Below the pieces are notes generated by a model that was not told the DNA's origin, ran no database searches, and saw only the letters and a list, made by a program, of their open reading frames with translations. A stretch of 62,906 nt of DNA, counting the filler, from Reticulomyxa filosa (Eukaryota > Protista > Foraminifera): the NCBI GenBank assembly GCA_000512085.1. It is 21 parts of 21 records of this genome, joined end to end, with 100 filler letters (N's around TTAATTAATTAA, not from the genome) between each part and the next. Parts side by side here need not be neighbours in the genome. Positions count along the whole stretch, not along the records: positions 50,083 to 61,805 come from ASPP01038552.1; 20 more parts are not named here. One strand, given 5' to 3'. Below, in pieces: positions 8,885-61,905 of the stretch (position 1 is the first letter of the stretch; the number at the start of each line of letters is the position of its first letter). The position numbers and the translations under genes are program-made.

Positions 8885-9049
8885 CTTTGTATACATTACC
8901 ATATACATATATGTATTCCAAATCTTTTTTTTTTTTTTTCAGTTTTCACNNNNNNNNNNNNNNNNNNNNNNNNNNNNNNNNNNNNNNNNNNNNTTAATTA
9001 ATTAANNNNNNNNNNNNNNNNNNNNNNNNNNNNNNNNNNNNNNNNNNNN

Positions 9050-9085
<36 letters not shown>

Positions 9086-9396
9086 AAAAAAATGTGTTCA
9101 AGCGACAAAATATTGAGAGGAAAAAAGCAAAAAAACGATAGTTGTTTGTAATGTTTCCTCCTATCAATCTCCCGCCTAACACATGGTGCACTTAAAGAAA
9201 AACGACCAAAAAAAAAAAAAATAAGAGAAAAAAGCACAGTTACAATCACAGCAACAAAATGATACAAACACAGGTACTTATCACATACAATTTTAGCTTG
9301 TGTTTTTAATTTTTATTGTTGCGAGTAAAAACACAGCTTACATTCGCTGCGCACACACAAAAAAAGGAACAAATAAAAAAAGTGAACAATCAAATA

Positions 9397-10322
9397 TTAA
9401 TGAGGCTGTGTGCATGGCGGCAAAGTGCCATCAGGATGGAATGTATCAGCAACCCATTCAATCCATCGTTGAAACTCTTTGCCATTGATGAAGCGCCGGT
9501 AGCTATCCGAGTACATGACATTGATGAGTTCTTGAGCAACTTTATCAAAAAGTTCGACGAGGCGCTGCAACACGACGTCATAATCGACACTATCGATGGG
9601 TTTCGAGGGACTTTATTGTAAAATGATATGATTATGATGCATGTTTGTTTGTTTGTTTGTTTTTTTTTTAGAGCCACAAAAAAAAAAACGAGTGAAACTT
9701 TGCAGTGAGCGTGAATCCTTGAGAAGAGAGAAGATCTTGCTTTTCAGGCAGCTGTATGTGACTCACGATAATCTGCTGCACCTTAGCAGTGGTATTGGCA
9801 AAGGCATTTGCATTGTCGTGGTGATTGTTGTCGTGTTTTTCGCAAAAGTGATTCTTGGAGTCAACGTTGTCATCATTGTGATCCTGATGTGCACGAGTCG
9901 CAATATTGGAGCTGTGGTCCGCAGCAGCACCGCTGTCCAAGGGGTTGGCAAGCGACATCATGTTAGCTTTATGTGGATCATGATCGTCCAACTCGTGTGG
10001 ATCATAGGACACATAATGGTCGTGATTCGGGGTCTCACGTAGAGTGTACATGTCATCGTCATGATAGCCATGATCTAGTCTTGTCTTGGCTTTTTGTTGG
10101 TCATGTTCATGGTCGTGGTCATGGTCATGGTCATGTTCATGGTCATGATCATGCTCATGATCGTGATCATGGTCGTGTTGCTTTTCTTTTTCATCGTCTT
10201 TTCTGTCCACATGAACGATACGCGTCGTCTCCAAAATCGGAGGCAACACAGTGAAGTTACGAGACATTTCCGGAGCGGACACCGGATTCGTCAAGTCGTT
10301 AATTGTTCTGCTTTCGCTATTG
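9397..10322 (-). CDS. RGS-domain protein C-terminal fragment with His/Asp repeat
   Basis: Exon 9610-9397 (not in the ORF track) reads PSKPIDSVDYDVVLQRLVELFDKVAQELINVMYSDSYRRFINGKEF, matching the RGS C-terminal consensus FD.AQ.EI..LM..DSY.RF. It joins ORF 9668-10294 through a phase-compatible GT-AG intron at 9611-9698. Confidence 0.75.
10096..10175 (-). repeat. (His-Asp/Glu)n coding repeat
   Basis: HDHDHDHEHDHDHEHDHDHDHDHEHD encoded by a degenerate hexamer repeat. Confidence 0.85.
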
Positions 10323-10358
<36 letters not shown>

Positions 10359-10550
10359 CAATAGCGAACTTTAAAAAAAAAAAAAAAACTGAGTCCAATA
10401 AAATACACAATACGAGTATACAAAATCAATAATAATAATAATAATAATAANNNNNNNNNNNNNNNNNNNNNNNNNNNNNNNNNNNNNNNNNNNNTTAATT
10501 AATTAANNNNNNNNNNNNNNNNNNNNNNNNNNNNNNNNNNNNNNNNNNNN

Positions 10551-10621
10551 TTTTCATGGAGAAAATCGATTCTCTTCATATAGTGGCATATGTATGTCAG
10601 TTTTTTTTGCAATCTACTGTA
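10551..10621. mobile_element. Tc1/mariner terminal inverted repeat at contig edge
   Basis: Near-identical to 17077-17147 (ttttcatggagaaaatcgattctctt...gtatgtcagttttttt...actg|ta); ends in ACTG plus a TA target site. Confidence 0.75.
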
Positions 10622-11980
10622 TTTTCAATGGCTCTTGCAAAAAGTTTTCTAAATTCAGGGCAATTTCATAATATTAATTCGTACATTTATTTTGATTTAG
10701 GATTTTTCATCTTTTTTAAATCAAACATAGTTTTTAAAAAATTAAAATGTTTAAAGCTATTTCAAAGACAAAATTAAACAAATTGATCAAATAAAAAGCA
10801 AAATCAGTGTGCATAATTTACATTTACCTATTCAATTCATCATGACATACTTCTATTTTTCATAATTTTTAAATTAATAATCTTTAATGTCTAAAAAAAA
10901 ATTGCAATAGAATCAATTCTGTTCTCTAATAAAAAAAATAGTCCAAAAAAGGAAAAGCAAAAAAGAAAAATTTAAAATGGCAGCGCATAATTAACGTCTT
11001 TCTTTTTGATTTTGTCTTTTTTGGCATATTTTTAAACAAGTTTTAACACATTTAAACTTGTGGGCCTATAGAAAAACGCGTTCCATTATGCTGATGACTT
11101 TTGTTGTAATGTTACTGTGATATATGAATGATTAATAATGACAAAAAATTGTAAAAGTTAACACTATTCAACAAAAACAAAAAATTAAAAACAGAAAATT
11201 TAAAGATCAGAAAAAATTGCTTAAACAAAAAAAGCAACATACTTGATCAATTTCGTTATCTAATTTATTGTTACTATTCTTATTTCTATTCAGACGAGAA
11301 AAAAAAAATGGTAATAATAAAAATAATTTTCTTTTCTTTACATTTCAAGTTGATCTTCTTTGTTTAAAAAAAATTTAAAAAATAGCAATTTTTTCACCAA
11401 ATAAGAAAAAACTCAATATACAATTTTTTTCAAAGAGAAAACTATTATCTTTTTTTCCACAAAGACGATTTTTTCAAGTGACAAATTTCTTATTATTTTT
11501 TAAAAGTGATTAAAACTTAGTGATTTATATTACTTCCAAAACATGGAAAAAATGATTCAAACAAATTTTAAAAAAGCAAATGAATGAAAAAGCGAAAAAG
11601 AAAAAATTAAATCAGGCGGCGCCTTCATGAACATTCTAGCCCCGCCCAAATTAATATTTTTTTTTTGCTTTTGTCTTCATTTGCTTTTTTTTAGCTTTCC
11701 AACGGTGTACTTGGTTGGTTTCTACGACAAATAGAAACGAATAAATCTCGAACTTAGTGATTCACAAAGCAAATCCAGTGCAAAGTAAGCATTTTGATTC
11801 TAGATTTGTTTTATTGTTTTTCTTATCATAAAGAGTTTATAGTTTTTGGCAATCTTAATTTCAGATTTGGATTAAATGTTGATATTGCCTTTGCACAAAT
11901 GCTTACCGATACTTGATAAACTTAAATCCTTTTGAAAGAGATAAGTAAGTTTTATAGTTAACAAGAGAGATATTGTAATA

Positions 11981-13182
11981 TTAACAGCGCCTGTGTACAA
12001 TAGAAGGACCGCTGTCATCATATTCATGTTGAGTCACCCACATGTCTTGAAAAGACTCTAAATTACAAAGTATGCTTCCTCCAATCCAAGAGCTGTATTT
12101 ACGTTGAGGAGAAGCAATAACTTTGATTGTCATTGTTCCGGAAACTAATTTGGCAATTTCTTTTGTTAAACGAACATCAGTGTTTGGGAACATCGTAGAA
12201 CCACCAGCTAAAACAATAGATTTATAAAAAGTTGAACGAAAATCAATGTCACATTTCATAATACTTTCGTAAAGTATTGTATGAATTCCTTTGTTATATC
12301 CATTTGAAGTAGCTGAAAATAATGCTTCAGGACATTGAAACCTTTCAGATCCAATTGTGATAATTTGTCCATCAGGCAATTCATAATTTCTTTCAATATC
12401 AGTGGATGTTTCTGCTTTTTTTAATTCAGACTGATAATCCTCTGCAACATATGTAAATTTTTCTTTTATATCACGAATTGTTTCTCTTTCTAAATTCGTT
12501 GTCAATGAATAACCTTTTTCTCTCAACATTTTCAGTAAAGAGTCAGTTAAATCACATCCTGCAAGATTGAGCCGCGAAACTGCAACTTCATATGCAGTTC
12601 CCTCATACACTGGAGTGGATTGTGCCATACCATCGCCAGCTTCGAAAACAAGACCTGTTATCATTCCATTTCCAAATAATGATAACATTGGCTGCAGACC
12701 CAAATACATTCCAAGAACATGAAACTTCTCAAACATAATCTCAGGTACTTTTTCTCGTCTTGCTTTTGGAGTTAATGGAGCTTCTGTCAATAGCACGCGG
12801 TGTTCGTCAGGTTGAATATATAACTCACTGTTAACATTTGGTAATATGTACAAAGATATGTGTATGTGCATAAATTGCTTAATTTGCTTTGTTTTTTTGT
12901 TTACTTGTGAAATATATGATGCCAAATTTTCTCCATGTGGTCCCAATTCATGACCAATGTACGTTCAATTGGATATGTTAAATTCAAAAGATCTTCTTTG
13001 TTTTGTGCATCACTGCCAAAACAAACATCTTTTTGTATTGTTTCAAATGTTATTCCAGTATGCTTTGGTTTTCCAATCACAGTCGGAAATACTATTTGTG
13101 GAACAAGCTCACCACTAAAACCGGCTTTCGTTGTTCCACTTCCATTGTCAATAATCACGTGCTCTCTATTCTTTTCATCCAT
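11981..13182 (-). CDS. Divergent actin / actin-like protein, one intron (12828-12904)
   Basis: IIDNGSGTTKAGF, YPIE, VLLTEAPL, YELPDGQIITIGSERFQCPEALF, VLAGGSTMFP, WIGGSIL, EYDDSGPSIVHR; splicing gives HIFHN-ELYIQP. Confidence 0.93.
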
Positions 13183-13829
13183 ACCCAAAAAGAAATTATT
13201 CGTATTTGTGGTTCAATTAAAGCATCTTTTAAAAAACAAAAATAACGGTCCTCTCAATTCAAAAGGGGTTTCGCTTACGTTTTTTTTTTGTTTTGTTTTT
13301 ACAGTGTTGTTTTAACGCAAAAGTGCACCAAACTTTAATTAAAAATTCTTAATATCACTAACAAAATATTTGAAAAAAAATTTTTCGTGAGGGAACTGAG
13401 TAATAAAATATTATTCTAAAATTTTAAAAAATTTAAATACTTATGATCTTCCTGCACTTTCATTCAGTACTGCAATGTTTGACATAACGCGGATACTGAT
13501 AAAAATAAATTGCAAATTTATATTACTTTGAAAAAATGGCAAATGGAAACCAGTAGTTATGTTATAATTGAGTTGATTGCACTTAATTGACACTTGAAAA
13601 ATTTGTAATAACAGACAAGGACAATAAAATTTTTTCTAAAGACAATATGTTTATTTGTAGAAGAACTGACTAAAATCTCCTAGCAGACAATGACTTTTAG
13701 TTTATTTCAAATTTCTCTTGTTAGTGTAAGCAAGGTTTGCAGAAGCGAAGAAAGGTCAAGTTCCCCGTGGGCCACAAAAACATATACTTAATTGAAAATC
13801 CTAGGCCAATAATTAACAGGCCAGAGAAA

Positions 13830-15043
13830 ATGAAGTGGGGGAAGCTCTTGCAAAAGGAGGCTCTATGGAAATGGCGGACAAGTTATATAAATTACAAGAA
13901 ATTGAAGCAAATCATAAAACAACTGAGACAAATCAAATCCAAAGAAGACAACAAATATGACCAACTCTGCAAAGACTTCTTCACACGAGTGGACCAAGTT
14001 TTGGGTTTTCTCCAAAGCAAATTCAAGGGAAAAGGGAAGGAACGAAAAAAAAAAAAATACACACATTCATAAAAAAAAAAACTCAAAAGGACATAGAAAT
14101 GGTGGAAAAATTTTATTGGACGAAAAAGACGAAATTGGTGGAGCAAACGAAAAGTGTGCTGAAGATGTTTGACCATGTTTTGGATAACAGTGTACGTTTT
14201 CGAAAAGAAAATATCGCTGCCACATTATGTGTGATATCTGGCCTTTCCAAATTGCTGCCTCAGTTACAACAAATGAAGGTGTGTAAATCTTTACATATGC
14301 ACACACCTGTGGTTTAAATATAACATATGATGTACGATCGCTGCACATATATTTATCTATGTGTTGTATATATGTATATTATATATACATACATATTACA
14401 TAAATATATATATATATATATATAAATATGCATATATACAACTCGAACAGAGATACGGAGAACTTAATCAAGAAGGGTTCACTAAGATCTTGAAAAAATG
14501 GGACAAACACGTGACCAGCTCAAAGTTGTCGAGCAAAGAGAGTCGTGCATTGTTGCAGAAACAAAAGTTTTTTACCGAAGCCGAACTTGCGGGATTTCTG
14601 CAACACGTGGAATCTGTTATTGATCATTGCAACTCCATGCTAGACAATCGAGACGCTACTACCACCAGCAGTGGGATTCGTAGTCCCAGTCCAAATAAGG
14701 TTTTGTGTGTGTGTCTGTGCTCTCCTCCCCTTTTTTTCTCTCCTTCTCTCGCATCCATAATTATGTATAAATAAACAAAATGAGTGAAGCTCATAATAGA
14801 CGAGAAACTTTCCCTGCCCAACAGTCCAATGACAGATGACGAAGGGAGCCGCAGTCCAATGGTGGACGAACGGTTAAACAGTATGGGGTGGACCATGGAT
14901 GCATTGGACATCAACGCGCTGATCAGCTCCTTGCGAAAAAACCAAGCCACGACTGTGGTCACAAACGTCATGAACATTCGCAGTATTAATGGCAATTCTC
15001 TGTTAATTTGTGCATGTGCTTGTGGTGCAGCCGATGTTGCAGG
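13830..15043 (+). CDS. SPX-domain protein followed by an ankyrin repeat (Pho81/Gde1-like), 3'-partial, spliced
   Basis: MKWGKLL...WRTSYINYKKLKQIIK (SPX start) and ELNQEGFTKILKKWDK (SPX lysine cluster), then NIRSINGNSLLICACACGAADVA (ankyrin-like). Confidence 0.82.
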
Positions 15044-15057
15044 TATGTATACGTCCG

Positions 15058-15097
<40 letters not shown>

Positions 15098-15197
15098 NNN
15101 NNNNNNNNNNNNNNNNNNNNNNNNNNNNNNNNNNNNNNNNNTTAATTAATTAANNNNNNNNNNNNNNNNNNNNNNNNNNNNNNNNNNNNNNNNNNNN

Positions 15198-15239
15198 GAT
15201 ATCGTTTTATGCGTTCAGTTTTCTTTGCAACTTACTGTA
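15198..15239. mobile_element. Possible related Tc1-type TIR end at contig edge
   Basis: cagttttctttgcaacttactg|ta resembles the termini at 10598-10621 and 17124-17147. Confidence 0.45.
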
Positions 15240-15740
15240 TATTTCACTTTGTTGAATAAAATGCAAATTATACAACTTACAAAATAACAAATAATGATTG
15301 GCATATTGCAAAAAACTTATATAAAATTTTATTTTTTAAAAAAAGAAAAAAAATTTCTTTAATTTTATCAATTAACACTTCATCTTTTATTAAATCATTC
15401 TACAAATAATTTCAATTACTTCAAAAATATCTTGATAATCACTTATACTAAATATTTTTTATTTGTGAAATTTCTTCTTTATTACGGGATAGTTATTCTT
15501 TTAAATATTGTAAATACAATATTTCTTTATACTTAGAAGTAATATTATCAACTAAATTCTTGACTATATTAAATGTTGAAAAATCCAATATATTATTACC
15601 TTTTTGATAACCTATTTTACATTAAAAAAAAATTTACAAAAAATTTTATGTATATATGTATTAGTAGTAACAGCGCATGTAGCTAAAACAGCGCTAAATT
15701 ATTATTATATGAAAAATTGTTTTTATTTTTAGACATAAAT

Positions 15741-16252
15741 AATTGTTTGCATTCATAGTGATGTCAAGACTAATGGCATTTTTGGAGCAAATAGGACTTC
15801 AGCTTGATCACTGGCATCAATGAAAGTGTACTACCAACTTTTGCGATGTTTGTTGCTTTTCCAATTTTACATTTTATTTCCAACATTTGACAAGGAGTTT
15901 TATAAGCTAGGACATGAATCGATAGTATAAATCATCCTTTATAGACGCCTTTTTTGTCATTAGTTGATTCTTTTAATTGTTCCAGATGATCTTGAACAAA
16001 TACAAAAGCGGTAAATTTGGTTGCTTGTTTTGGTGGGTTAGGATCTACATCATGATCATCAATGCATACAACATCACCAGTGTGTGTCATATTTTCCTTT
16101 TTCAAGTTTTTCACGTTTACACCGCCAGCTTTTGCTTTGTAGACTGTTTTGTGGTGCATTTCAATGGAAAATGCTTTGTCAGTTGAGTTCGTTGGATAAA
16201 AACGAGCATGGATACCAGTGGTAATTGTTCCTTGTTCAATACGTCCAGTAAT
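15741..16252 (-). pseudogene. EFL: EFL (elongation factor-like, EF-1alpha paralog) pseudogene fragment
   Basis: TGRIEQG..FYPT..AFSIEMHHK, FVQDH..QLK, PCQMLEI, DQAEVLFAPKMP are EFL-type motifs. It carries an in-frame TGA (15932-15934), lacks the DNV of GDNVG and has frameshifts. Confidence 0.82.
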
Positions 16253-16352
16253 NNNNNNNNNNNNNNNNNNNNNNNNNNNNNNNNNNNNNNNNNNNNTTAA
16301 TTAATTAANNNNNNNNNNNNNNNNNNNNNNNNNNNNNNNNNNNNNNNNNNNN

Positions 16353-17147
16353 ACTTTTATCTTTCGTAGTTTTTAACAAAATTTTGAAATTTTTTAAAAA
16401 TATTCTTTTGTTAAAATTTTTTTTTTGTAATATTTTTACTATTTTATTTGCTTTAATTGTGCATTGATTAAAGCTTCAATTCTCCTTGGTATTGACTTAA
16501 CTAGAGCTTGACATAGTTGAGTACAGTATTTATACAAATTTGCAAATTTTAACATTTCTTTGATATGACTAAATCTAAATTTGGCATTTTCTTCTTAGTT
16601 ACTGCTACCAAACCATTTATCTTTGGAGTTCTTGTTACAGTTTCATAAGAAACTTTGATTTCACAATCATAATCTAACTCTTTATTGACTTCTTTTTCAG
16701 TTTTGCACTTTCCAGAAACAAGCTATATCAAAATTTTAATCTGAACTCGCAAATGAGTCTTATATGACCTGCCAGATCCAACTTTTCTTTTTACAGTTCC
16801 ATTACAATTATATGTCGCCAGCCAAAATCGAAACGAAAATATACTTACATTAAATTTATTTGCTACAGATCTAATGATAGCTCCACCAACCAGTGTACCA
16901 ACAGCAGCTCCTTTTTTAAAAGCAATCAAATGTTTAACATTTTAAATATCAAGCTTTTGAAATGTCAATTAAAAATATCAACAATAAAGAAAATATGCAA
17001 AAAAAAAAATATAATATTTAAAAACCACAAGATTATTAGATATTTTTTTAAAAAAATTAGTTTTAAATCTTTATTTTTCATGGAGAAAATCGATTCTCTT
17101 TATACAGTGCCATTTAGGTATGTCAGTTTTTTTTACAATCAACTGTA
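16353..17147 (-). mobile_element. Internally deleted, decayed Tc1/mariner DNA transposon
   Basis: TA|CAGT terminus at 17147; paired-like HTH region (IRSVANKFNVS..GTVKRKVGSGRSYKT..KVSYETVTR..NGLVAVTKKKMP) and Tc1 C-terminus (CQALVKSIPRRIEALINA, ~16460-16515); DDE core absent; stops present. Confidence 0.8.
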
Positions 17148-18088
17148 CTACAGTCAAAAATTTTATTTGTTTTTTATTTCTGGTAAATTTTACACGAAAA
17201 ATATCTCCAGGATAATGATAAGATAATGGAAGTTGTTTGAAATATTTGGCCTATTTATTTCGTTGTGTTTTCTTTGAATACACGATGCATATACACATAA
17301 AAATATACGAAACATACTGTATAATCATTTTATTTAAATCGGTGACCAATCTATTTTAAATATACGAAGATCGAGCCTAAAAATTTAAAATGAAGGTGAT
17401 CTCTTGGTTACACTGTTTATTTGTGTTTACAAAGGTTACTTATTATAAAATTAGTGTTCGTAAGCCAAAAACACACAAAGTTATTACACTAAGTCCATTC
17501 GATTCACGAACAACTAAAGATTTATTCCTCACTATTGTAAAATATATGCAGACAAACCACATAAATAGGCTCTATGTACAGAGATCTAGAAAAAATAAAA
17601 GAAATGCGAAACTTGACCAAACGCTTTTTCCAAAGAAAATTCCAACTGCTTTCTTTTTAGAGCAAACCGTTGATAAAAATAAAAATGTATCAAAAAGTAA
17701 ATTCAACAACGATTATGAAAATAAGAAAAGAAGGGAATAATGTGAAGAAATTTAAGAGAAAAGGTGTTGCAAAGTGAGCGTTTGTTTCCTGGAGACAAAA
17801 CCTTGTCCAATTGACAAACAAAAATAGGGTCGTGGATGAAAGAAGATAAGTGGAGCAATAGATGGTGACAACAATGAAAGTGCCAAAAAAAGTAACGAGA
17901 TATTAACATATTGGAAAGATAATCGAAAACATGTGTTCTACAAATTAATTCAAAATAAGGACTAACAAAAAGCTTCATTGGGTTTAGATAATTTTGAAAC
18001 ATTTTTCTCAAAAAAAACACAAAAAGGGAGAAAAAAGAGTGTGGTGTGTGCATCCTTCTTTGGTCTAGTGGTGGTGTCAAAGAACGAA

Positions 18089-18555
18089 TTACATTTCGGC
18101 CTTAGCAAGCACCTCTAATGGTGTCATAACCTCACAACCCTGCACGCTTTCAACTTTGGAGTCAGGAGTGAGCTCCAAATTTTGACAAGGATGATATTGT
18201 GTTAGCCAATCGTGATATTTGTCAGTCGATTCGAGCAAAGAAGAAGAAAAGAGATTTTTGTAATTTTTTTTGTTTTCAAAGTGTTTCAGCCACAACAACG
18301 GACGTTGATCGTCAAAAGATTGTCCTTCTATTTCGTGACCACTATTTGAAGATTCGGTTGTTCGATTGACTTGGCCGAGCAAAAATCCAGTTGAATCCAA
18401 TTCATGTTCGGCATAGCGTGTATATTCAATACCACCAAAATTCTTTCTATCGCGTTCACGAGATGATCCTGAGAGTTCTTGGTTTAATGTTGTGCTCAAA
18501 TGTTCATAGCATTCGTGGGCATGGATATGTGAATCAAACTCCAACACCAATGATA
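18089..18555 (-). CDS. Hypothetical protein, final exon
   Basis: 153-aa ORF of coding-like composition following a TA-rich intron and AG acceptor; no motif recognised. Confidence 0.4.
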
Positions 18556-18579
18556 CTATTTATTTATTTGTGTGTACAT

Positions 18580-18610
<31 letters not shown>

Positions 18611-18737
18611 TNNNNNNNNNNNNNNNNNNNNNNNNNNNNNNNNNNNNNNNNNNNNTTAATTAATTAANNNNNNNNNNNNNNNNNNNNNNNNNNNNNNNNN
18701 NNNNNNNNNNNTATTTGTATATGTGCATATATAAAGG

Positions 18738-19509
18738 GCTAGTTCAATCTGTGAAAAGCAAGTATCAAGACTCACACCGACGTTACGAACAACACTTGTC
18801 TTCACTTCCAGTGGATCAACAAAGAAATTGCGTGTATATTTGTAGCTATCGCTTGATTTACTATTTTGTCTTCCTTGGGAACTTGTATTTGACGGTGATG
18901 TTGGTTTTTCGAGTGCTGTGCAACTTCATTTATCCGTGGATCATTGTAGCTGCTGTGCTCGCATTGTCCATCCAAGGGTCGCTGTTTTCCTTCACTTCGC
19001 CGTCGTTCTCGTTGGTATTTATGTTCTGGTTCTTCTTTGCTCTCATGATTGTCGATTGGATCATTTGGTTTGTCTATGGACTCAAATATGTCATTCCCTT
19101 CCATTACTACTTGTACCATGTCCTGCCCGGGGCCGAGAGGCCTGTTCTACGACGCTGGATTACCTCCGCCATTGAGGCCAACAAACACAATGATACAAAC
19201 AGTCAATATCAAATCCAAAGTCCAAGTGCAAACTTCATTCGCAGTGTCGATTCAAATGTTGAAGATCACAATGTCGCTTATAACAATACTCGTTATGATA
19301 CTCAAGGAGATCATCATAGTTTACAACTACAACAAATGGCACAAGATCCTTGCCACTCTCTGTGTCAAGAAATTTCCAAATACTATCATGAAATGGACAT
19401 CACTCCATATCGAAATCAAGTTGTTCTGGAATTCTTTGGATTTGACTTAGCCATGCTTGTGCTTTCGTATTTACCACAACCCAGTTATGTTAAGCTACTT
19501 TATGACTGA
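18738..19509 (+). CDS. Hypothetical multi-pass membrane protein, final exon
   Basis: Three hydrophobic segments and an open frame to TGA at 19509, preceded by an intron-like end. Confidence 0.55.
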
Positions 19510-20160
19510 AACACCGATTCCAGACATTCAAAGCATCACTTTCCTTCGTACATTCCTTTCCTCTTAACACATATATCATGCATCAATCCTTTTTTTTTTT
19601 TTTTTTTCGTAAGCAATTACTGGTTTTCTTTTTTCCATTCTTCTTTTTTACTTTGTTGGAGTTTTTCTCGTTTTTTTCATATTGTTTGTGTGTACTCTTA
19701 AAAGAAAAAAAGTCCTTTTATTTTGTTCCCAACGGTATATTTATCGGAATACGAACTCAAAATAGAAGCAGTTCATTGTTTACCCTTTCATAGTTCAAAA
19801 TTTAAAAGTCACATCACTAGCATATCCTTCCGCGTGATATTTGTCTAAAAACTACAACTTTGAACTGTTTTGCAGAATTTATCTTTTTTTAAAAAAAAAA
19901 AAAAACATTACCATTGTTATAGTGATAACTTAGCGAAAGTCACTTCACACAAACAAGAATCTTTCTAAAAATCTCAAAAGCTAAAGTACTTGTTTGTTTT
20001 GGTTGCCTTGTTAATTCAAACATCCGTTGTAAAACAACGATTAAATAACAACAAAAAGAACGAAAAGAGTTACATTCAATACATTGACTTTGTCCAAAAA
20101 TATCTGCAATTTAAGCATGTTTTGCAAAAAAAATTGTTTGGATTTTTTTGTCTTTGACAA

Positions 20161-21280
20161 TCAACCCCATATTCGGACTGTCCCATCGTGAGAACAGGAC
20201 AAAATGGCATTTCCATCTGATGAAAATTGCACACTTGCCACCGTATTCGGATGTTCTTTCAATTGTTGGATTTCTCGTCCTGATTTGACATCCCAAATTC
20301 GAATGGTTTTATCCACAGAACATGACACAATGAAAAGGCCATTGAGTGAAAATCTTGCTCCGATAACATTACCCAAATGCCCCTCAAATCTTTGAATTTC
20401 TCGTGCTGATTTTATATTCCACAGTCGGATTGTTTCATCCGAGGAGGACGATACAATGATACGACCATCTGAAGAAAATTGCACTCCTGTCACAGCATCC
20501 AAATGTCCTCTTAATTGTTGCAATTCTCTTCCTGACTTGACATCCCATATTCGAATTGTTTTATCCCACGAACCTGACACAATAGTACAAGCATCCGGCG
20601 CAAATTGCACTTCAGTTATTGTATCTTCATGTCCTTCAAATCTTTGCACCTCATTGCCAGATATCGTGCTCCATATCCGAATGGTTTCATCATAAGAGCA
20701 GGTCAAGATCGTCTCGCCATTGGGTGAAAATTGTGCCGTCGTGACAAAATAGGAATGCCCCTCAAATTTGTGCATTTCACGTCCCGATTGCACATCCCAC
20801 ACCCGAACTGTTTTATCATCGGAACAAGACACAACAAAGCGGCCATCTGGCGAAAACTGTACCTTATTACAATGTCGGAATGCCCTCCAATTTTTTTAAT
20901 CTCAAGTTCTGATTGCACATTCCATATTCGAACTGTTTCATCTCCAGAACAAGACACAATAGTGCACTCATCCGGTGAAAATTGAGCACAATTTACTTTG
21001 TCGGAATGACCTCGAAACATCTTCAATTCTGCAAAAGACTTGGCCTTCATTTGTGATTTCATCATCACAGTCATGGCAAATATGAAACATATCTCTTTTT
21101 TTTTTCAATTCAAGTTTCTTTCAACAAAAGACAAAACAAAATACAAATAAAAATAAAAATAGGCGTGGATAAATCTAACGTATTTAAAGATCATTTGATT
21201 AAAAGCTTCAATCCATCCCCAATCAATGAGGACTTGCCGATGCCAATTTTCTAAAACGCAATCCACTTTTTGTTGAGTCT
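20161..21280 (-). CDS. WD40-repeat (G-beta-like) protein with one frameshift near 20860
   Basis: About seven GH...FS.DG..IVS.S.D.TIRIWD repeats across ORFs 20703-21074 and 20161-20832; upstream exon VDCVLENWHRQVLIDWGWIEAFNQMIFKY. Further degenerate upstream exons are possible to ~22200. Confidence 0.88.
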
Positions 21281-50082: not shown

Positions 50083-50615
50083 TATCATGGATATCCCCAT
50101 TCAAACATGAACGTGAAATTTTGTTTTCAATATCTTCAGTAGGTATTTGTGCTGATAACACACTACATAAAAGCTTTTCTGCATGGAATGCAAAAGTAGA
50201 AAGTGAAGATGAAGATACGCAGATGATATTATTGACATGGACAGAATATGATGAATATATACAACAAACTATGCAAATAAGTGCAACGTGGAATCATACA
50301 ATTGATTTGAATGTCATTTATTTTGTACTTAAATATTGTACAAAAGAAAATATATATCACGCAAATAAAGTATTGCTTGAGTTTGAGCAATGGAAATCTC
50401 GAGATAACAAAGAACAAAAGTACAAAGAGAGAATAAAGGAGTTTTTGGAAAGACGTTGCTGCAATCATGGTATCAATTTGTTGTTTATTTTTCTTGAAGA
50501 AAAGCGCGAGCTACTATCACATACTGCGCTTGAATTAATACCTTTTTTTACCATTAAAGTTGGATTTCCGTTTGTTAAAAATGATTATCATTTTTATCAA
50601 TTGCTTCCATTTTGA
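50083..50615 (+). CDS. ADP-ribosyltransferase-like (R-S-E clade) C-terminal fragment plus helical tail, 5'-partial
   Basis: The frame is open from the contig edge: SWISPFKHEREILFS resembles the ART 'IS.F..E.EVL' motif with the catalytic E-x-E. Upstream R and STS motifs are not in the window. Confidence 0.5.
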
Positions 50616-51152
50616 AGCTTTTTTGTCTGTTATTATAATATACAGTAGAATAAAAATATCTACGAATCATGTAGTTTTTAAACGTTATTTTTACTTTTAT
50701 TTTATCTTTCGAAATTTTCAAAAATTTGCATCTTTTATTTGATTTTTTGAAATTTTCGAGAAAAGTTTACAATTCTTTTTTAGCATGTTCGTAAATACCT
50801 TATGAAAATTTTTTAGAAAATGAAAAAAAACCCAAAAAATTTTCTTTATTATTTTTTTGTAATATTTTTATGAAGTTTATCGATATTTTTTTGTTTGGTG
50901 TTTTGATATTTTTGGATTATTTATTTAATTGATTTTGTTTTTGCTGCTTTAATTGTTTTATGCTATTGTTATTTATTTATATCTTACTTTTTTTTTGGAA
51001 TTTTGCAATGTCTAAAAAGACAATTTGATGTAATTGTCTTTAAAACAATAAACATTTAATTAAAAGTTTTACAAGTTTAAATGTTTAGATATTATAAAAA
51101 GAAACAAAATGCTTTGTTTGAAAAGTTTTTTTAAAATTGAATATATTCATCA

Positions 51153-51390
51153 CCAAAATGCGATATGGTAGCAGTTCCGGACTTTGGATCATGAGCAATG
51201 GAAAACTGTGGTTTGGTGACGTATCGAGAATCAATAATAATGTTAATCAAATGATTAACCCCTGTGCCACAACTGCAGCCCGCAGCTCGCATTGTGTGCT
51301 GTGAATTGGAACACATTGTTCGGCAATCTGGTCACGATGGATTGGTGGTCTGAGCTGTAGCTGAATGAGAGATTTGCGCGCTTCGTGGAA
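51153..51390 (+). pseudogene. M1 (puromycin-sensitive-like) aminopeptidase pseudogene fragment
   Basis: [25 protein letters not shown] (GAMEN motif), a corrupted HEXXH, and FGNLVTMDWWSEL*LNERFARFVE. Confidence 0.85.
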
Positions 51391-52473
51391 TGTCTCAGTT
51401 GTTCCGTCCTTTTCCATCATTTTACTTTTTTTCAATTTTTTAAAATTTCTTTGTCTTGTGCTCTTACACTTATTGCATACTTAAAAAAAATAAAAATGTT
51501 GAATACTTCTGCTTTTTGCATTTTTAAGAAATAAGCATGGTATATCAATAGCAAACAAAAATTAGTTATTTTTATCAACAAAGTAATTAATTAAAACTTG
51601 TTAGATATTTCCAACCATTTGAGACTTAAGCAAAATGCACATAGACAATACCAATCCAAAAAAAAATCCCAAATAGCTCTTTTACTTATTTTAAAAAAAA
51701 AAAAAATGTTATAATCTGTGGTGTCTTGACTTTCCACACAATACTTACTATTCAGTTCTTCCATCTTGGGAAACTGATATCATATATCTTACCAAATAAC
51801 CTTTTAATATCCTTTCGCTTTTAAATCGTTTTTGTTTAACCATTTGAATTATTCTTTTGTTGAGTAATTTTTAATGTATCCATTATTATTCAAAAGTTTT
51901 AACAGTCAAAGTTTTTCTGTGTATTTCGAAGCATGTGCAATTTCACAAAAGGGCAATATTACTTCTTTTCTTAACCTAGGGCTTGACATTTTTCTTTAAT
52001 TATTGTTATTTGTGCATGACATTCTTTCAATCCCTTATCTATATTAACTACTTGTTTTAAGAGCTGCAATATTTAAAGATTCTTTTAATAGTAATAGAGA
52101 TGACCAAACCAAAGGTTTCAACAGCCACAAATCACATTGACACTTTTAAACTTGTGAATATGCAGTGATTTTTGAATATCGCCTTTACATTTGTTGACAC
52201 CTAATCCTGGTGTCTGTTCCAACAATATTCTTTTGACTAATTTCAACAAAAATTAAGAATTAAATTATTTGTCCATTGCTTGTATTATTTTTCAAAACGT
52301 GCACATTTGTTAAGAAATGCAAAATTGTCAATAGATACGTATATTCAATTATCTCATTTCACAATTGATAGCCAAGCACTGAACAAATTGTGAAACATTG
52401 CCACAGCTTCATCAAAATATGACAGTTAAAAAAAAATTGCATCAGAATCAATTTTTTAAGTACATAATTACAA

Positions 52474-55400
52474 TTATGTGTATGACTTAGAAAATTTTAT
52501 TCGGTAGGCATCAACAAGTGCATCACCTTTCGATCCACCAGTATTTCTGAGCACTTCTTCGGAAATTAAGTTTGTCAACAAATCGGCGCCTTTTACAGAA
52601 TTAATGTCCAAATCTTTGCATCGACCACCTGTAATTCGAGCTATTTCTTCAAAATTTTGTCTTGCTCGTGCATCCACAAAAAAGGCGTGCACAGGAATGC
52701 TACGTTGTTTCAAGAGTAACAATTCATCTTCATAGTACGTAGGACTGGCGAATAATTCCGTATTTCGCCAATAATCATCTCCGTCCTCAGTCCTTCCGAT
52801 AAAGTAGGTCTGAGGGAAGCTCATCTTCCTCTTTTGTAGTACTTCCGGTGCCAAATCGGATGTCCTGAGAGAACAATCCTTTCTTTTTTCCGTTACATCT
52901 TTTTTTGTATTTGCCGGTGCATCTCCAATCAAGATGACTTGTGAAACCTCGTCTTTTGCACACTCTCTGTTGACATGAGTCAATCCAACTTCAATTGCTT
53001 CATTACCCCATCCATATTCAGCCACCACACCTTCCATAAAACTGCGCAGATTGTCAGGCTTTGATTCCCAAGGGGAAACTTGTAAAATCTTGTCTTCAGG
53101 TGCATTATAATTTCGATAAACCACAAATTGCATTTCAAAAATATTGGAAGAATATCCACTTTCCTTTAAAATATCTGTGATACGCTCAAACATAATGCTT
53201 ACTGTATTTTTTGCTTTTTGCAACAAATGAGACATGGAGCCAGTTGCATCCATAAGAACCACTGTACGCGAAGAGGTTTCCTCTGCCGCTCCTCGATTTT
53301 GTTCACAAAGCTTTTTCTTCACCTCAGAAATCCTATTATTCTTCAGCATTGCAATCAAATCGTTTGCTAGTTTGTGTTCTTCTTTAACTTTTTCCACAAA
53401 TTTTTGACTCTCTGCATATTGAGTCTTGAAGTACATATTTCTCTTTTCATTAAGCATTGGATAAAAGTTTCCCGAGCTTCGTGCTTTTTCAATATCTTTT
53501 GGAGTGATTAAAAATCTTTCAAGTAATTTGTCACACAATATCAAACTGTAGGAACCATATCCTGCTTGTCTGGCCGTTCGTCCTTTGATTTGCATCTCCT
53601 CTGATAGCTCTTCAGAAAGGAAAGCTTGAATCACATGAGGACCACCATTGGCAGATACAATTTGATCACGACACACAAAGTCGGTTCCTCTTCCAAATTC
53701 TTTGGTAAATAGCCCAACTTGACCAGATGTGGTGGCACGTTTAATTAACGATTCTTTCTCTTGAAGAAATGTTTCTTCTGTCATCACAATTGCATTACTT
53801 TTGATCGGAAGAAAGTTGGATGACTCATAAAATTCCATCAATTGTTTTTTGGTCTCAAAGAATACCAACACAGCTCGGTTTGTTCCTAAAGTTTTCCCTA
53901 CAAGTCGATCGTCAATTTCTTTTTTTAGTATGATGAAATAATCATTTTCATCGACAATAAGAATATCCTGTTGTTCTACAAAGACAAGATTATTCTTTCC
54001 AAACAAAGATGGCATATATGTATGTTTAAATATATTGTAGTCCTTTTCTATCACTTTTTGTTCTGGTTCACTCAATGTCTCCAATGTTCCACTCATTCCC
54101 ATAATGCAAGAGAAATTTTTGGGAACCTCGGCATACGAGAAATTTCCAATTTTAAAGGAAAGGAATATGTTATTTTTGAAGCTTTCGATACTAATCCGTT
54201 TGTTTGCATATTCGTGATAATATGCAAATAAAGTCTTGTATCCATAGCGCACATTGTAACAAATGTTATCTTGTTCATTATAGCCAATCTTGTCATTGCT
54301 CACTTGATATCCATGAGATTCAAATTTTTTAACATCATTCAACATATCTTTAATTGCTTCATTCAACAATAAGTCCCATTCTTTCAATGCATTACAGCAT
54401 TCTTTATATTCATCAGATCTCTTCACATCCTTTAATTTTAGCTTGGTTGATCTATTTTGCCAAATGAAATCAATAAGCTTAGTAATGGAGCCATGTCGTA
54501 CAGTGGCCGCGGGTGAATAACAACTGCCATAAAACTCTTTGTTAAAAAACACATCAACCTCGTCAATCAAGAGAATTTTTGCACGAGTCACACGTGGAAT
54601 TGCCTGAGCTCTTTGCCTTGTCAGGGAGAATTAAGTTTTCCACGAGTTTGCGTATATCACCTCCTTCATTAATCACTCGTTCGCAAAGTTTATTGAAAGT
54701 GTCATAATGGATATGATCAATCACACCCAATATATTAAACAACGACTCAAAATTTTTGAAATCTCTGGCGCTCAAATATTCGCTGTATGATGCACAACTT
54801 ACATCAAAGCCAAGCAATGCCAATACACAACAAGTGACTGCCAAAGTCACTGATTTCCCTTCTCCTGTCCCAATCTGAATTAAATTGTTGGTTAATTTAA
54901 TTTGCCTATGTCAATGTCCAACATACGAAATATGGCAATCACTTGAGCTGGATGCGGTTGTATCAAATAATCCTTTTGATCACGCACACCTTTGGCATCA
55001 TGATAAAATTGTGCATTCTGAAGTGTCCACAATGCAAAAATGTAGGCCATTATAGTCGGGATTTTGTCTCGAATATTTGTATCCCACTTTATGTTATTAG
55101 ATTTTTGTTCGATACTTGGAGTATGAATTTTTACATTATTTGCAATTGTTGCGAGATTATTGTCATTCCTTATCAAATTTTCTTTTATTATCTTCTGGTA
55201 CGTGCTTAAAAATTCCGCATACCTTTTGGACAATTTTGTTTTGTCTATTGCGTCACCTTTGATCCCAATATGTTGCAAAACATAGTCAATCCCATGTGCT
55301 TGGGTTTTCTGATTGAATAATGCAATAGTATATCCTCTGAAGATACTGTGTTCAGCAACAATCTTCTCACCCAATCCAGTTTCATCTTTTTCTAAGCTTA

Positions 55401-58400
55401 ACGCCAACGTTGGAGTATTGCTACTATCTTTGTGCTTTCGTTTATAAGCGCTCAAGAGTTCGTCGATACGTTTATTAATTTCATCCTTGAAACTGTAAAT
55501 ACGCACAGATATTTCCTTCATTTTTAATAGCGATGGTATTATTTTTTCTTGGCTTAAGTCTTCCATCGCTTCTTTTTCCAATTGACTGACTCGATATCTC
55601 ACTATGGAGTTAATAGCTTCAATTTGAGATTTCACGATACTTGGAAAGATGGAATGTTTTCCCATGAAAGTCAAGCAACAGTGACCCTGATTGATATAAT
55701 CACAATCGAAGGCAGTCCAAGATGAGCCCATTTTCACCGTGCAATTGTGTATTCCTTTTGTAATATAACGGACAATTCTTTAATACTTCGACATTGGCCA
55801 CGTGGGATTTCCATTGTGATATCTGCTTTATAAACTCGAGCTTTGGTTTGAGTTGTCTGAAAAATCGATCCCTTTCAACATCATTCGTTAAGGCTTTGTT
55901 ATCAATGATACCCTCACTCACAATTGATTCGGTTATCTTTTCCAACTGATAATTAAAGTTATATGTTATTTCGGAATAAGTGAACAGTTTCACTTCTCCA
56001 GAAATATTACAATGCGTCTTTCTTTTCATGAATATTTTCACATCTCTCCAAAGTGTGTTCTTTTCGTTGGTAACTATTTTTATAATATCTAGCGCAACTA
56101 ATAAACTTTCATCATTCATCTCTTGCATTGCCTTCTCATATTTTGCCCGCAACAGATTAAAAGCAGAAATTATTTGGTATCCAAGTCTTTGATTTTGTCA
56201 TTAAAGTCGTCAGGTAGAATCTCCTCTTTGTTTTTATTTTCTTTCATTTCGAGTGTGTCTTTTTTCAATGTCATACACTCCAGCACCAATATAAGAGATT
56301 TTTCCACTATTTCAATTGTGCTTGTATCCATATCAAAATGATCTGAAAAAGCAAAATGAGTGACAATATTATTGTGGCATTTGTCAAAATTATTGATTAG
56401 TGTATCACGAGCAATGCTGATACATCTATTGAGCTCCGGCATTTTTTCCTGGAATACAAGTTTATAACGAAATAATTCTTTCAATTGCTCCAATGCTCCT
56501 TTAATATCGTCTTCGGCCCATTTTTTCTCTAAGCTGTTGCTAATTTTTTGAGTTATTTCTGTAAGATTAGCTTTGATCAATTCCGTTTGATTAGATGTAC
56601 CATTGTTGAGCAATTTGCAAATATCTTCCACATTTTTAGATTTGATTACACCATTTACTTCCTCATTTTCATTTTTTATTCGATACTGAATTTCTTTTTC
56701 GCATGCAACAATTTCTTCTTCAAGATCACTTTTCATGGGTTCGGGCAATGTCTTCAGCACTGATTTACAGAGTTGAATACGTTTTTCAATATCCCATTGA
56801 TTTAATTGGCCTGCTTTGCTACAAATATCTTTTAATTGTTCCCGAATTTTTTGAGTGATATCTCCTTGAATTTTTCTCCATGTTTCTTTGTACATTGCAG
56901 TCGTTTCCATGATTTTTTTCAGCTTTTCATACAATTCTTTGGGAGGACACGAGGAATATGGATTCAACGTACGTTCTTCCAAGTTGATGTCTTTGTATTG
57001 CTTCACAATGTCATCCAACTTATTTACAATTGTTTTCTCGAGTGTATTGACACGATTCTTAATATCATTGGTATCTTCTGTTGTTTTATTAGAAGAAATG
57101 GGTTCACAATAATTACTTAAAATGCCCACAATTCTTCGAATCAGTTTAATTTTATTTTCCGCCTCCAAAAAATTTGAAGCATTTACCGATGCATCCACCG
57201 TGCCCAATACCATTTCCATCCATTGTTGGAAGGCTGCTTTCGTATCATCTTCCTTCTTTTCAATATCTTCTTGTGTCTTTTCATCCACAAATTCAATGAC
57301 ATATTGTTTCGCTTCTTTGATTTGTTGAAGCTGTCTCTCAATTGTTTCAATTTCTTTCAAATCAATGTCATTTTCCCCTAAAAAGATCACCTTCATCCAA
57401 GTGCTTTGAGTCAACTCTTTCAAGGATCGCGTCAGAGAGTTTTGGCTTGCTTGAATACATCTTCGACACGAGCATCACCATCTGCACGCTGTTTGATTTT
57501 TGATATCTCTGACGCCACGTCCACATAACGACATTGGTTAATTGCTTCCAACATAGGTCTTGTATCAATCAGGTCGTTGACGATCTTCTTTTGATATTCC
57601 AGAAATAGATCGCGGAATTGACAATCTGGCCTGGCAAAGTTGTCCAATGCACACAAGGCTTTGGCCACAGCAATTTTGCTTTTCAAAGGTTTCAAATTGG
57701 TCAGCTTCACAGCATTGAGCATCGCATCGGAGAGATCCAAATGGATTTGTCGCAATCGACTACAGAATTTTTCCATGATATCATTTGGGAAGTATTCGAA
57801 TAGCATGGGATGGCAATCGTTTAGTTTTTTCACCTCATTCAATCGATTGTATGTGATTTCTACTTGTTCAATCATTTGCGCATTGTCATTGTCCTCGCTT
57901 TCATTGACGCGTGACAAATTGAGTTGATGTTGGACCATGTTGGCATATTCTCGTAAAAAGCGGTCGATCAAAGTGAGCGTATCGGCGATTTCTTGTTTCA
58001 AAGGAAAGAGTGTCTTTTCGATTTCTTTTGTGACTTTCTCCTCGCCACGTGTGTCAGATGGAGGATGAGAGGACACCTTGTGAACTTACCACTTGTGGTG
58101 TTAGTTGAAAAGACACTGGCCTTGCATTGCTTCAAGTACAGCAAAGTCTTTTCAATTCGCGCGGGATCCAATACGTCAAAGTAATAGCCATTGTTATTGG
58201 CTAGCTTTGCGATTTCGCGTTCGTACTGTCGAATCTTGCCATTCAACTCGTGTTCATTTTGTATCAGTCTTTGAATTTCACTGTCTGTAAAATGGTATGT
58301 TTTTAATGACTCGGAGATTAGTTCCAACGACGAGCCCTCGTTTTTCAATAACTCCTCATATTTTTTTTTTATTTGTGTCATGTCATTCAGATCACTCTTT

Positions 58401-61400
58401 AATTTGCTTATCTGCTGTTCCTGCGTATGTTTACTTGCACTTTCTTTTTGTTTCAAATTGTACATTTCCTTTTCTTCTTCCCTTTTTGCTTGTCGCACTT
58501 GATCGATGGACGAGTACCCATTTTTTCTCAAAAAGCTAATGATGGCCCTTCTCTTACTCTTAGTGCTGTCATTACACAGTAGACCATACCGAACTTCAAT
58601 ATCACACAATTGATCCAGTTGCTGGTTGCATATGATACTGTCTTCTTGAAATCGCTCGTTTTGGATTGCAAACATGCTATTTGCACTTTGCAATTCCTCC
58701 TCAATGTTGGCGATCTTGCGGTCAATATCCTGTGCATTTTTATATTTCATTTGATGCAAATACGAATTGGCCTTACGGACACCCTCTGTGCACGACTTGA
58801 TTTGAATTAGGTTGTATTTGATCTCCTCTTGTTTAGTTGCACTTTTCTTCTCCAGCGCAAATTCGCGCTGAATGGCAGCCAATGTATCTCGAATGGGCTG
58901 TTCCAATTGACACACAATTTCTTGGCGATGATGTGTTAGTTCTGGAATCACCTCTTCCAATCGACGCAACTTTTCCAAATGCATAATAATCTTGTGTGCT
59001 TCATCGAATTGCTCACAGCAATCCAAGTCCAATTCCAATTCCTCACTTCGTTGTTGCAACTCCCATAAATGTGATATCAAACTCTTTTTAATAACATCCA
59101 TTGAATTGCTTGTTCCTCCTTCATGACGCTCATTAATCCAATTGGATCGACTCACACATAACACACATTCATACAGACGATTGTAGTCCAATGTCGTATT
59201 AGGCTTGCTCAGTGAACTCATCATTCTATTAATATCGCTTTGCACTTCACGCACAAATGCGAAAATTCTTTCGATTATTTGATAGTACTGTCCTTCTGTT
59301 CTTTGCTTCACTGGTCCCATGCTTCGCAGATCATCCATCACCAAAATTATATCCTTGATCTTGTCAAGTGCTTCATATCTCTGCGTTTCAAACAGACACG
59401 CAATCTTTTGTCCCATTTTCTCCAAATATCCAACTATTTCACTCACAAATGAACTGGCCAACTCTCTTGCCGATTTATCAAGACCTACATGTGCACAAGG
59501 CAATTCAAACGCGCTTGAGGCAGAGTCCAAAATAACAAATTTAGCTTGCAAAATACCCACATCCGTTTTATCAAGTTTTTCAACTCGAACATGACCAAGT
59601 TCAACTTTTTTGTCTTCCCCCTTTTTTTCATTTTCACTTTCGGTAAGGTTGTCAGTGTCTCTTTTTGTTGACTTTTTCAACACACAAAGTCCTTCTTCCT
59701 TGGTGTGTTTCAAATGTCTTAGCAATCCCCTTTCCAAATCTTCAATCTCTTTTTGAATGTCAATCACAGAGCACAGATGTTCGTGAAGAGGCATCGCCTT
59801 TCCAAGTTTTTCTATTTCCATTCGAAACTCTGCAAAATTATTCTCTTTGAAAAACTTTTTTGCCTCCTCGATACTCTTTTCAATCCCCGTTTGTAGCTTT
59901 TGACAAATATTGGTATAAGTGGCAGTGAAAGTAGGGAAGCATGCTTGCACTTGTGCAATCTTGTCCAAAGGTACTTGAAGGGCACTCATATCTTCTTCCA
60001 TTTGAGTTTGAATAATGCGTATGATATCGTTAATTTGTTTTTCGAGATTTTGATCCAGCGAATCGGCACAAATGGCATCAGGTAAAAAATGTTGCAACTC
60101 TGCTGCAGAGGTAAGTTTGTCGACAACTTTTTGATAGGCCAAAACATCATCTTTGCAAATGGGATGTAAGGAAGTGATGTGCGTATTGAACATTGATTTG
60201 GAGCTTTCACATGTTTGATTCCATTCTTTGGTCAGCTTTGCGATGCAATCATTATACTCATGTTCAATATCTTCATTCTTCAAAACCGAGTTCAAATCCT
60301 TGAGCTCACTCAACTTTATTTTGGCAAGTTTGTAGTCTCCATTTCGAAAAGATAACTCAATATTTTCTTTGTGTTTTTGCACTTGTGCATGGACGGCATA
60401 ATTGGAGGATTCGGAGACAAAAGGATGAAAGACTTCGTCTGGATGTTTGATGAACTTGTCCAATTCCACAAGTTTTTTCAATAAGTTCTTTGGTGATGTC
60501 TTCAATAAATCGGGTGCATTGACACCACCTTCTGTTTTGTCGACAATGTCCTCCAAAATTGCAACGTATCCTTCATCTGACTCATTTTGTGGCATCCCCT
60601 CGCAAATTTGCTTCACTTCGGAGTGAATGAATTGCACCTTATTGTCGGGACATTTGGTGAACACGTACGAAAATGCAGTGAGATGGTCTTTAATTGAGGG
60701 CATAATTGCCACCAATGTGCGTGCCAAACTTTTAATACAACTCATTCGATAGCCTTGAGCGGTATAGCAAATCAACACCACTGGCTTGACACTGCGACAA
60801 TTTTGGAGTGCTCCAACGAGTCCAATACCATTGGCTACGTCGACCTCGGCGCCACTTGTATCTTCGAATCCTGGAGTGTCACAAAGTGCAACAGGCTCTT
60901 TTATTGAATATATACCCATGTCGGCAAGATTAATGGGGACAGCGGTAACATATCGTGTCACAGATTTCGTGCCAGGTTTTGTTTGGACATTTGTTAATGC
61001 GCTACTTTTAGTTTGAGTTGGAGCAATGTGAGGTACTCCATTCACAATCTGTTGTTCCAAAGTCGACCCCGCGAGATAATGAATTAATGTTGACTTCCCA
61101 ACTCCGGTGCCTCCGAGTAGCAATATCACATTTTGGTCTTTAATTGCTGTCGTTGTTTCCTCTGCTTTTTTTACTAACTCCAACATTAACCTGATATCAA
61201 AGTATTCGTCTTTTTGTCTGAATAAAGAGGGTTGGTCGAATGTATATTTTTTTCATCCTCATTGTCAATTGATATACGACTGGCTGTGTTTGTTTCTTTC
61301 GGCTTTGTTGTTGCTTTGTCCTTATGTATATACCTTTGTTTTTCTTCTTCTTCTTCTTCTTGATCTATATCGTTAGATGCATTATGTGTTGACTGCAAAG

Positions 61401-61790
61401 GATCTTGCTCATTACTCGATCCTTCTCTCTTTTCATTCGCTTGCACTTGTATTTCACTTTGTCCTTGCTCACCCTCAATCATATGCTCACTACATCTTTC
61501 GCCAGGACTAGAACTAGTCACCTTGAGCTGAAGCCACCATGTGCTGCTATCGTCCGCATATCGATCCATCCAAACACGTTCCAGCTCCTTGCCACTCTGA
61601 ATTTTGTTTTTGCTTTCGTCTTCTAAGTATTCGCCATGCGACAAACCTCCCAACACTTGCTTCAAATCTTCAAAGTGCTGCGCCCAATTCTCTTTGCCCA
61701 TTTCACCATAAAAATTTACATCATTTGACTTTTTTGGACACCATGTTATTCTCTTGTCGTCTTTCGTTATTCCCAAACATCTCTTTTTTT
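52474..61790 (-). CDS. Giant GTPase - helical stalk - SecA-like SF2 ATPase - vWA protein (~3,100 aa), broken by about seven frame changes
   Basis: Eight abutting or overlapping minus-strand ORFs. G1 LLLGGTGVGKST (~61090-61120), G3 DTPG (~60875), G4-like TKCP; SecA-like QPHPAQ, QIGTGEGKS (54851-54877), SYSEYLSARD, LIDEVD, GMSGT, FGRGTDF, QIKGRTARQ; vWA VVLMDATGSM (~53240), EAIEVGL, VILIGDAP. Confidence 0.85.
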
Positions 61791-61905
61791 TTAAAAAAAA
61801 AAAAANNNNNNNNNNNNNNNNNNNNNNNNNNNNNNNNNNNNNNNNNNNNTTAATTAATTAANNNNNNNNNNNNNNNNNNNNNNNNNNNNNNNNNNNNNNN
61901 NNNNN

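Follow-up and report, generated by a model that had tools for sequence, protein, structure and literature searches.

SecA-type motors are known as the protein translocases of bacteria and plastids. Motors of this type working outside the canonical Sec pathway are represented by the secondary SecA_DEAD-domain proteins of Planctomycetes and Verrucomicrobia (PMC4452313) and by the SecA-like ATPase modules of giant actinobacterial toxins (PMC8195603). Compared by description, these proteins are bacterial and tied to type-I-secretion-like genes or secreted toxins, and an architecture with a GTPase, a helical region and a von Willebrand factor A (vWA) domain is not described for them. Such an architecture is the subject of the present analysis. 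It is encoded by a gene of Reticulomyxa filosa, a foraminiferan and thus a phagotrophic protist, as the first-pass annotation of this DNA had stated, and lies in a 62,906-nt stretch composed of parts of the assembly GCA_000512085.1, called here the window. The relevant part of the window, positions 50083–61805, is the reverse complement of contig ASPP01038552.1 (11,723 bp).

The gene and its homologues

The architecture composed of a GTPase, a helical region, a SecA-like motor and a vWA domain is real and is contained in one gene. A search with the G region in which long candidates were allowed recovered single proteins of 2,700–3,090 amino acids (aa) with both the G domain and SecA_DEAD. Among them are RFI_15929, RFI_03864, and RFI_33142 of R. 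filosa, a 3,048-aa protein of Adineta steineri, a 2,720-aa protein of Tetrahymena thermophila named 'helicase carboxy-terminal domain protein', the 3,046-aa K2X50_00940 from a metagenome-assembled genome (MAG) of the Gammaproteobacteria, and proteins from several metagenomes. The Adineta gene is one uninterrupted open reading frame (ORF) of 9,147 nt, and the MAG gene is one ORF of 9,141 nt, located on a 216-kb contig together with genes for a ribosomal protein, dUTPase and other bacterial genes. A related protein is encoded on a bacterial contig of 142 kb, next to a Coxiella-type domain, an isolated 9.1-kb ORF of the family is present in a seemingly eukaryotic metagenome contig, and Blepharisma stoltei has two full-length members. 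Unbroken single-ORF homologues from Adineta, Blepharisma, Tetrahymena, and Coxiella-like Gammaproteobacteria MAGs span 2,700–3,460 aa, and the C-terminal 700 aa encoded in the window are 50–52% identical to the Adineta and bacterial-MAG proteins. Because uninterrupted homologues of about 3,000 aa exist, the GTPase and the SecA/vWA parts belong to one gene, as first proposed, and the view that they are separate genes fails.

In the window the gene forms a collinear coding run on the minus strand, from 61803 to 52477 (about 3,100 codons), whose 5' end is cut by the contig edge with the frame still open. The single run of about 9.3 kb reported in the first-pass annotation therefore stands as regards collinearity, but not as an unbroken frame, since seven frame changes split it into eight open stretches of 205, 1084, 217, 434, 165, 295, 115, and 718 codons, with frames overlapping by 15–85 nt at each change. 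When aligned to the intact homologues P0155, P0168, and P0160 the eight pieces are collinear and adjoin without loss of residues, and their order is the same on P0177. A search for a GT..AG intron at all seven junctions found none; introns were rejected on this ground, as well as by the overlaps and by the abutting of the pieces on the homologues. As the pieces abut without loss and without introns, the breaks are small indels. Programmed frameshifting and an alternative genetic code were also set aside, the long ORFs being bounded by standard stops and the homologues unbroken. GenBank annotates two genes here, RFI_36099 (partial, 1790 aa; 100% match to the window) and a 1145-aa neighbour, with artificial introns spanning the breaks; this split is an artefact of the frame breaks. 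The order of domains from the N- to the C-terminus proposed earlier is borne out by the motif coordinates and by the collinear alignment, and every motif listed at that time was located at exact coordinates (Table 1).

The SecA-like motor and the vWA domain

The view that the ATPase is a SecA-like motor rather than a DEAD-box-like one, which was also the initial suggestion as opposed to an RNA helicase, is strongly supported. A profile of the C-terminal 1,000 residues searched against the sequences of the PDB gave only SecA chains at the top (E 5e-16, SecA residues 96–617), whereas the best DEAD-box helicase reached 1.6e-4. The C-terminal part of an unbroken bacterial homologue, 52–68% identical to the window there, was modelled with AlphaFold2 (AF2; pLDDT 87). 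In a Foldseek search with this model the first 36 matches were all SecA, with E values from 1.8e-18 to 2e-11, and DEAD-box proteins followed at 1e-7 or weaker. In the model, about 140 aa of alpha/beta structure are inserted where SecA has its preprotein cross-linking domain (PPXD). About 90 more residues align when the SecA conformer is open, and the second nucleotide-binding domain (NBD2) is followed by a 41-residue helix like the SecA scaffold helix. The coordinates of the motor in the window were transferred from P0168 by alignment.

SecA_DEAD and P-loop_SecA exceed the Pfam cut-offs in relatives, while neither SecA_PP_bind nor SecA_SW (wing/scaffold) matches any family member scanned, and the NCBIfam SecA models score 38–43 bits against cut-offs of 725–1085 (43 bits where the cut-off is 862). 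Judged by its sequence, the motor is not a SecA orthologue. Common to SecA and the family is the NBD1/NBD2 DEAD motor with its SecA-type motifs. Unlike SecA, the family has this motor built into a 3,000-aa protein, at its C-terminal end, and occurs in eukaryotic nuclear genomes without a targeting context. It also lacks the two-helix finger and the C-terminal tail of SecA, because the vWA domain directly adjoins: in the model it starts straight after one long and one short helix.

The vWA domain itself shows the Rossmann-like vWA fold with the residues of the metal-ion-dependent adhesion site (MIDAS), in the D-x-T-x-S variant that the first-pass annotation had pointed out. In its layout the protein recalls Midasin/Rea1, a giant NTPase joined through a long linker to a MIDAS/vWA domain at its end, which could grip a protein substrate. 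This is an analogy only, as the motor of Midasin/Rea1 is an AAA+ ring and that of the family is of the superfamily 2 (SF2)/SecA type, and no relationship of sequence or fold is shown beyond the vWA domain.

The GTPase domain, the N-terminal region and the middle region

The G domain has a TRAFAC GTPase fold and resembles most closely the GIMAP/AIG1/Toc34 group, although by a small margin; the likeness to GIMAP/AIG1 seen at first thus holds. In an alignment of 36 sequences of the family G-x-x-G-x-G-K-[ST] is invariant, switch I reads S-E-T-R-Y with an invariant Ser and a near-invariant Thr, G3 is C-D-T-P-G-F-x-D, and an E-V-D-V-A-N-G block is conserved. At G4 the consensus is F-T-K-x-P, with F186 and K188 conserved and Asp absent. 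The TRAFAC fold and the G1–G3 motifs are shared with the GIMAP/AIG1/Toc34 GTPases of the septin-related TRAFAC clade, but these have the guanine-specifying Asp at G4 and match the AIG1 Pfam model, neither of which applies to the G domain of the window. A sequence-only search of the PDB with the G-domain profile gave P-loop-level matches only (SRP54, midasin) and was uninformative.

The globular region at the N-terminus of the window protein is conserved only among the R. filosa paralogues; Pfam gave nothing above threshold for it, and the ESM Atlas no usable match. Nothing in Pfam exceeded the threshold in the middle region either, which is helical at both modelled ends.

Table 1. Coordinates of the domains, motifs and frame breaks of the gene (window numbering)
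Feature	Position	Strand	Remarks
N-terminal conserved globular region, partial	61519..61803	minus	aligns to P0155 residues 66–206
Acidic low-complexity linker	61250..61518	minus	E-run at 61359–61342
Frame break 1	61252–61189	minus	overlap of open stretches 1 and 2; contains A7 run
TRAFAC GTPase domain, GIMAP/AIG1/Toc34-like	60443..61141	minus	motif positions given singly
GTPase P-loop GGTGVGKST	61114–61088	minus
Switch-I SVTRY	60964–60950	minus
G3 DTPGF	60880–60866	minus
G4 position FTKCP	60661–60647	minus	without Asp
Middle region, about 1,725 codons, no known domain	55270..60442	minus	between G domain and SecA-like motor
Frame breaks 2–5	58085–58001, 57474–57435, 56197–56173, 55779–55703	minus	inside middle region
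SecA-like DEAD motor: NBD1, insertion at PPXD position, NBD2, long scaffold-like helix	53287..55269	minus
Frame breaks 6, 7	54910–54895, 54630–54566	minus	inside NBD1
Walker A GTGEGKS	54871–54851	minus
Motif Ia YSEYLSARD	54787–54761	minus
Walker B IDEVDVFF	54567–54544	minus
Motif III MSGTL	54096–54082	minus
Motif V FGRGTDF	53697–53677	minus
Motif VI QIKGRTARQ	53592–53566	minus
vWA domain, integrin beta-I-like	52519..53283	minus
MIDAS variant MDATGSMS (D-A-T-G-S)	53253–53230	minus	D-x-T-x-S form
GNEAIE	53007–52990	minus	within vWA
LIGDAP	52932–52915	minus	within vWA
Stop codon TAA	52476–52474	minus	AT-rich non-coding flank beyond

Distribution of the family

The search for the same architecture proposed in the first-pass annotation found it as single ORFs in eukaryotes as well as in bacterial MAGs. 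Among 1.84 billion cluster representatives the G-domain profile matched 605 at E ≤ 1e-30, and many of these measure 2,400–3,460 aa; relatives of the SecA/vWA module number in the hundreds. The named members belong to R. filosa, bdelloid rotifers, Hydra, Hexamita (a diplomonad), Ectocarpus (a brown alga), Tetrahymena, and Blepharisma. The bacterial relatives of the G domain are all from MAGs of protist-associated lineages: Chlamydiae, Candidatus Odyssella, Rickettsiaceae, Coxiellaceae, and other Gammaproteobacteria. The architecture was already present in databases, a fact absent from the first-pass annotation, under the label 'SecA family profile domain-containing protein'. A search of the literature on SecA-like/vWA/GTPase combinations, Reticulomyxa, conflict systems, and bdelloids found neither a description of the architecture nor a functional study.

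In two closely related Gammaproteobacteria/Pseudomonadota MAGs (L004:10001-20794 and L007:3120-13912) the 3,046-aa homologue begins with a U-box domain; it follows that those bacterial copies would act in, or have come from, the eukaryotic cytosol. Downstream in both there is a gene for a TPR-repeat protein (about 200 aa) and then one for an unknown protein (about 370 aa), with overlapping stop and start, and the three genes may form an operon. A metagenome contig of 254 kb has, at L016:1-9600 and upstream of an intact homologue of 3,032 aa, a tandem array of repeated ORFs of 109, 172, and 34 aa, which suggests a repeat-rich eukaryotic region. In Hydra vulgaris the SecA-like/vWA module (LOC124816231; P0105) is modelled as fused to a hAT transposase dimerisation domain, and this fusion may reflect an error in the gene model or a link to a transposon.

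Copies in R. filosa and the state of the window copy

A count of paralogues, likewise proposed in the first-pass annotation, gave at least 15 family loci in R. filosa, some of them in head-to-tail tandem. An unrooted tree of the C-terminal module groups the R. filosa copies in one clade (support 100), with the window copy as sister to RFI_30511; they are one expansion within the lineage. The bacterial copies form one clade among the eukaryotic ones. With the tree unrooted and many of its rows being unlabelled metagenome proteins, no direction of transfer follows from it. Horizontal acquisition is plausible on sequence grounds, given the roughly 52% identity to the Coxiella-like bacterial proteins and the intronless copies of rotifers. 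It is unlikely that the contig stems from bacterial or rotifer contamination: the R. filosa copies group in a clade of their own, occur on many contigs and in tandem, and have AT-rich flanks of the eukaryotic type.

Same-strand, head-to-tail tandem copies are found at L018:1-720 and 3791-12385, and at L019:2-6546, 6761-7704, and 11412-20722. On contig ASPP01003559.1 an extra fragment with the vWA domain only is located between two full copies. The paralogues share 45–83% amino-acid identity. Between the window copy and its nearest paralogue dN/dS is 0.24 at a dS of 0.49, and therefore selection acted during most of the time since duplication. This nearest paralogue (RFI_30511, L017:3188-11302) is heavily fragmented upstream and has a truncated G domain, but retains an intact C-terminal ORF of 741 codons on which purifying selection acts, so that the SecA-like/vWA part could conceivably be produced on its own.

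What the first-pass annotation missed is that the window copy has seven breaks in its frame and is possibly dead. The copies of R. filosa differ in this respect: one break was counted in copy B of L019, where a stretch of 2,408 codons is open, about two in L018, four and one in-frame stop in L002, seven in the window, and at least 15 in L017, which has lost its N-terminus. Within the window gene the density of homopolymers is uniform, yet six of the seven breaks fall in 3.5 kb. The gradient of decay among the copies and the clustering of the breaks favour real decay, and the window copy is probably a recently inactivated pseudogene of a multi-copy, partly tandem R. filosa family, in which some breaks may be errors of assembly.

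Several observations weigh against inactivation. Each of the seven breaks is an indel, none of the roughly 3,100 codons is an in-frame nonsense codon, short A/T runs of 3–7 bases are present at every junction, and each of the five inspected R. filosa copies has at least one break, which makes a baseline of assembly error likely. The same observations, together with the preservation of coding material at the junctions and the dN/dS of 0.24, fit a gene that is intact and functional in the organism. Its seven breaks would then be indel errors of a draft assembly that is fragmented and rich in repeats, perhaps introduced where paralogues were collapsed into one consensus. To this explanation a lower probability can be assigned. 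It does not readily account for a density of breaks varying more than tenfold among copies of the same assembly, for the uninterrupted stretches of 7.2 kb in L019 and 5.7 kb in L018, or for the clustering in the window.

At lower window positions than the gene a small plus-strand ORF of 164 codons is located (50121–50615; a GenBank gene of 157 aa); the flank in which it lies is AT-rich and has long runs of T and of A. It has a weak, sub-threshold, GET4-like Pfam match (18 bits, cut-off 30).

Possible function of the family

An intact member is an intronless protein of about 3,000 aa composed of a variable N-terminus, a GIMAP/AIG1-like GTPase, a helical scaffold of about 1,700 aa, the SecA-like motor, and the vWA domain. 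In the proposed mechanism the G domain would serve as a nucleotide-dependent switch of dimerisation or assembly and the helical region as a stalk; the vWA domain would hold a protein ligand with its MIDAS, by an acidic residue of that ligand, and the polypeptide would be pulled or threaded by the SecA-like motor at the expense of ATP. By analogy with SecA and midasin, the best guess is a cytosolic machine for protein extraction or remodelling, not a Sec translocase.

A number of points speak against this picture: the mechanism is built on domain analogy alone, the helical stalk is drawn from the modelled ends of the middle region, the insertion at the PPXD position, matched to the domain of SecA by its place, is a putative homologue of it only, and GTP specificity is uncertain because G4 lacks the guanine-specifying Asp. 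A wider proposal, in which the intact members would be an unrecognised class of SecA-derived cytosolic threading or extraction machines, gated by the GIMAP-like NTPase, aimed by the MIDAS/vWA domain, employed by eukaryotes, phagotrophic ones among them, and exchanged between these and their intracellular bacteria of the Legionellales or Chlamydia type, can be put forward only tentatively and is, on balance, rather doubtful.

In the first-pass annotation the protein was presented as a candidate machine for defence or remodelling, and the defence reading is a speculation to which none of the tests made lent support. It would make the family a cell-autonomous immunity or conflict system with the GTPase as a sensor or switch and the SecA-like motor and vWA domain as the effector. 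Consistent with it are the proximity of the G domain to the immune GTPases GIMAP and GBP, the patchy, intronless, and multi-copy occurrence with lineage-specific expansions in R. filosa and bdelloid rotifers, and the relatives in protist-associated intracellular bacteria. The variable N-terminal regions fit as well, two U-box and one SAM domain having been found among 63 of them from relatives; in these same 63 regions, however, no Death, TIR, CARD, or nuclease/toxin domains were found. PADLOC returned P-loop-level matches only (mad8 at 24 bits, LeoBC at 21 bits) and no defence family, and the neighbours conserved in the two closely related MAGs are the TPR and the unknown protein, not known defence genes. 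An immune role is considered unlikely.

The multi-copy, intronless, tandem, and partly dead state of the R. filosa copies could also follow from the proliferation of a selfish mobile element with the family as its cargo or core, and not from a function for the host. The patchy phyletic pattern, the presence of the family in bdelloid genomes rich in horizontally transferred genes and transposable elements, and the hAT fusion modelled in Hydra would agree with such an origin. Neither transposase, integrase, nor reverse-transcriptase domains were found in or beside the gene, though, and terminal repeats were not seen; moreover, the paralogues are old, as judged from their amino-acid identity, and under purifying selection. 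A selfish element is very improbable.

Significance

For the annotation of R. filosa the analysis means that RFI_36099 and the adjoining model each represent one half of a single frameshifted gene, and that many models of the family in this genome are artefactual splits. For the family, it presents a SecA-like motor as a constant part of a conserved 3,000-aa architecture that also includes a GIMAP-like NTPase and a MIDAS domain. Since members are present in tractable organisms such as Tetrahymena thermophila, a cytosolic role of a SecA-like motor is directly testable. If the proposal of a threading or extraction machine is true, this would be the first SecA-type motor acting outside membrane translocation in eukaryotes.

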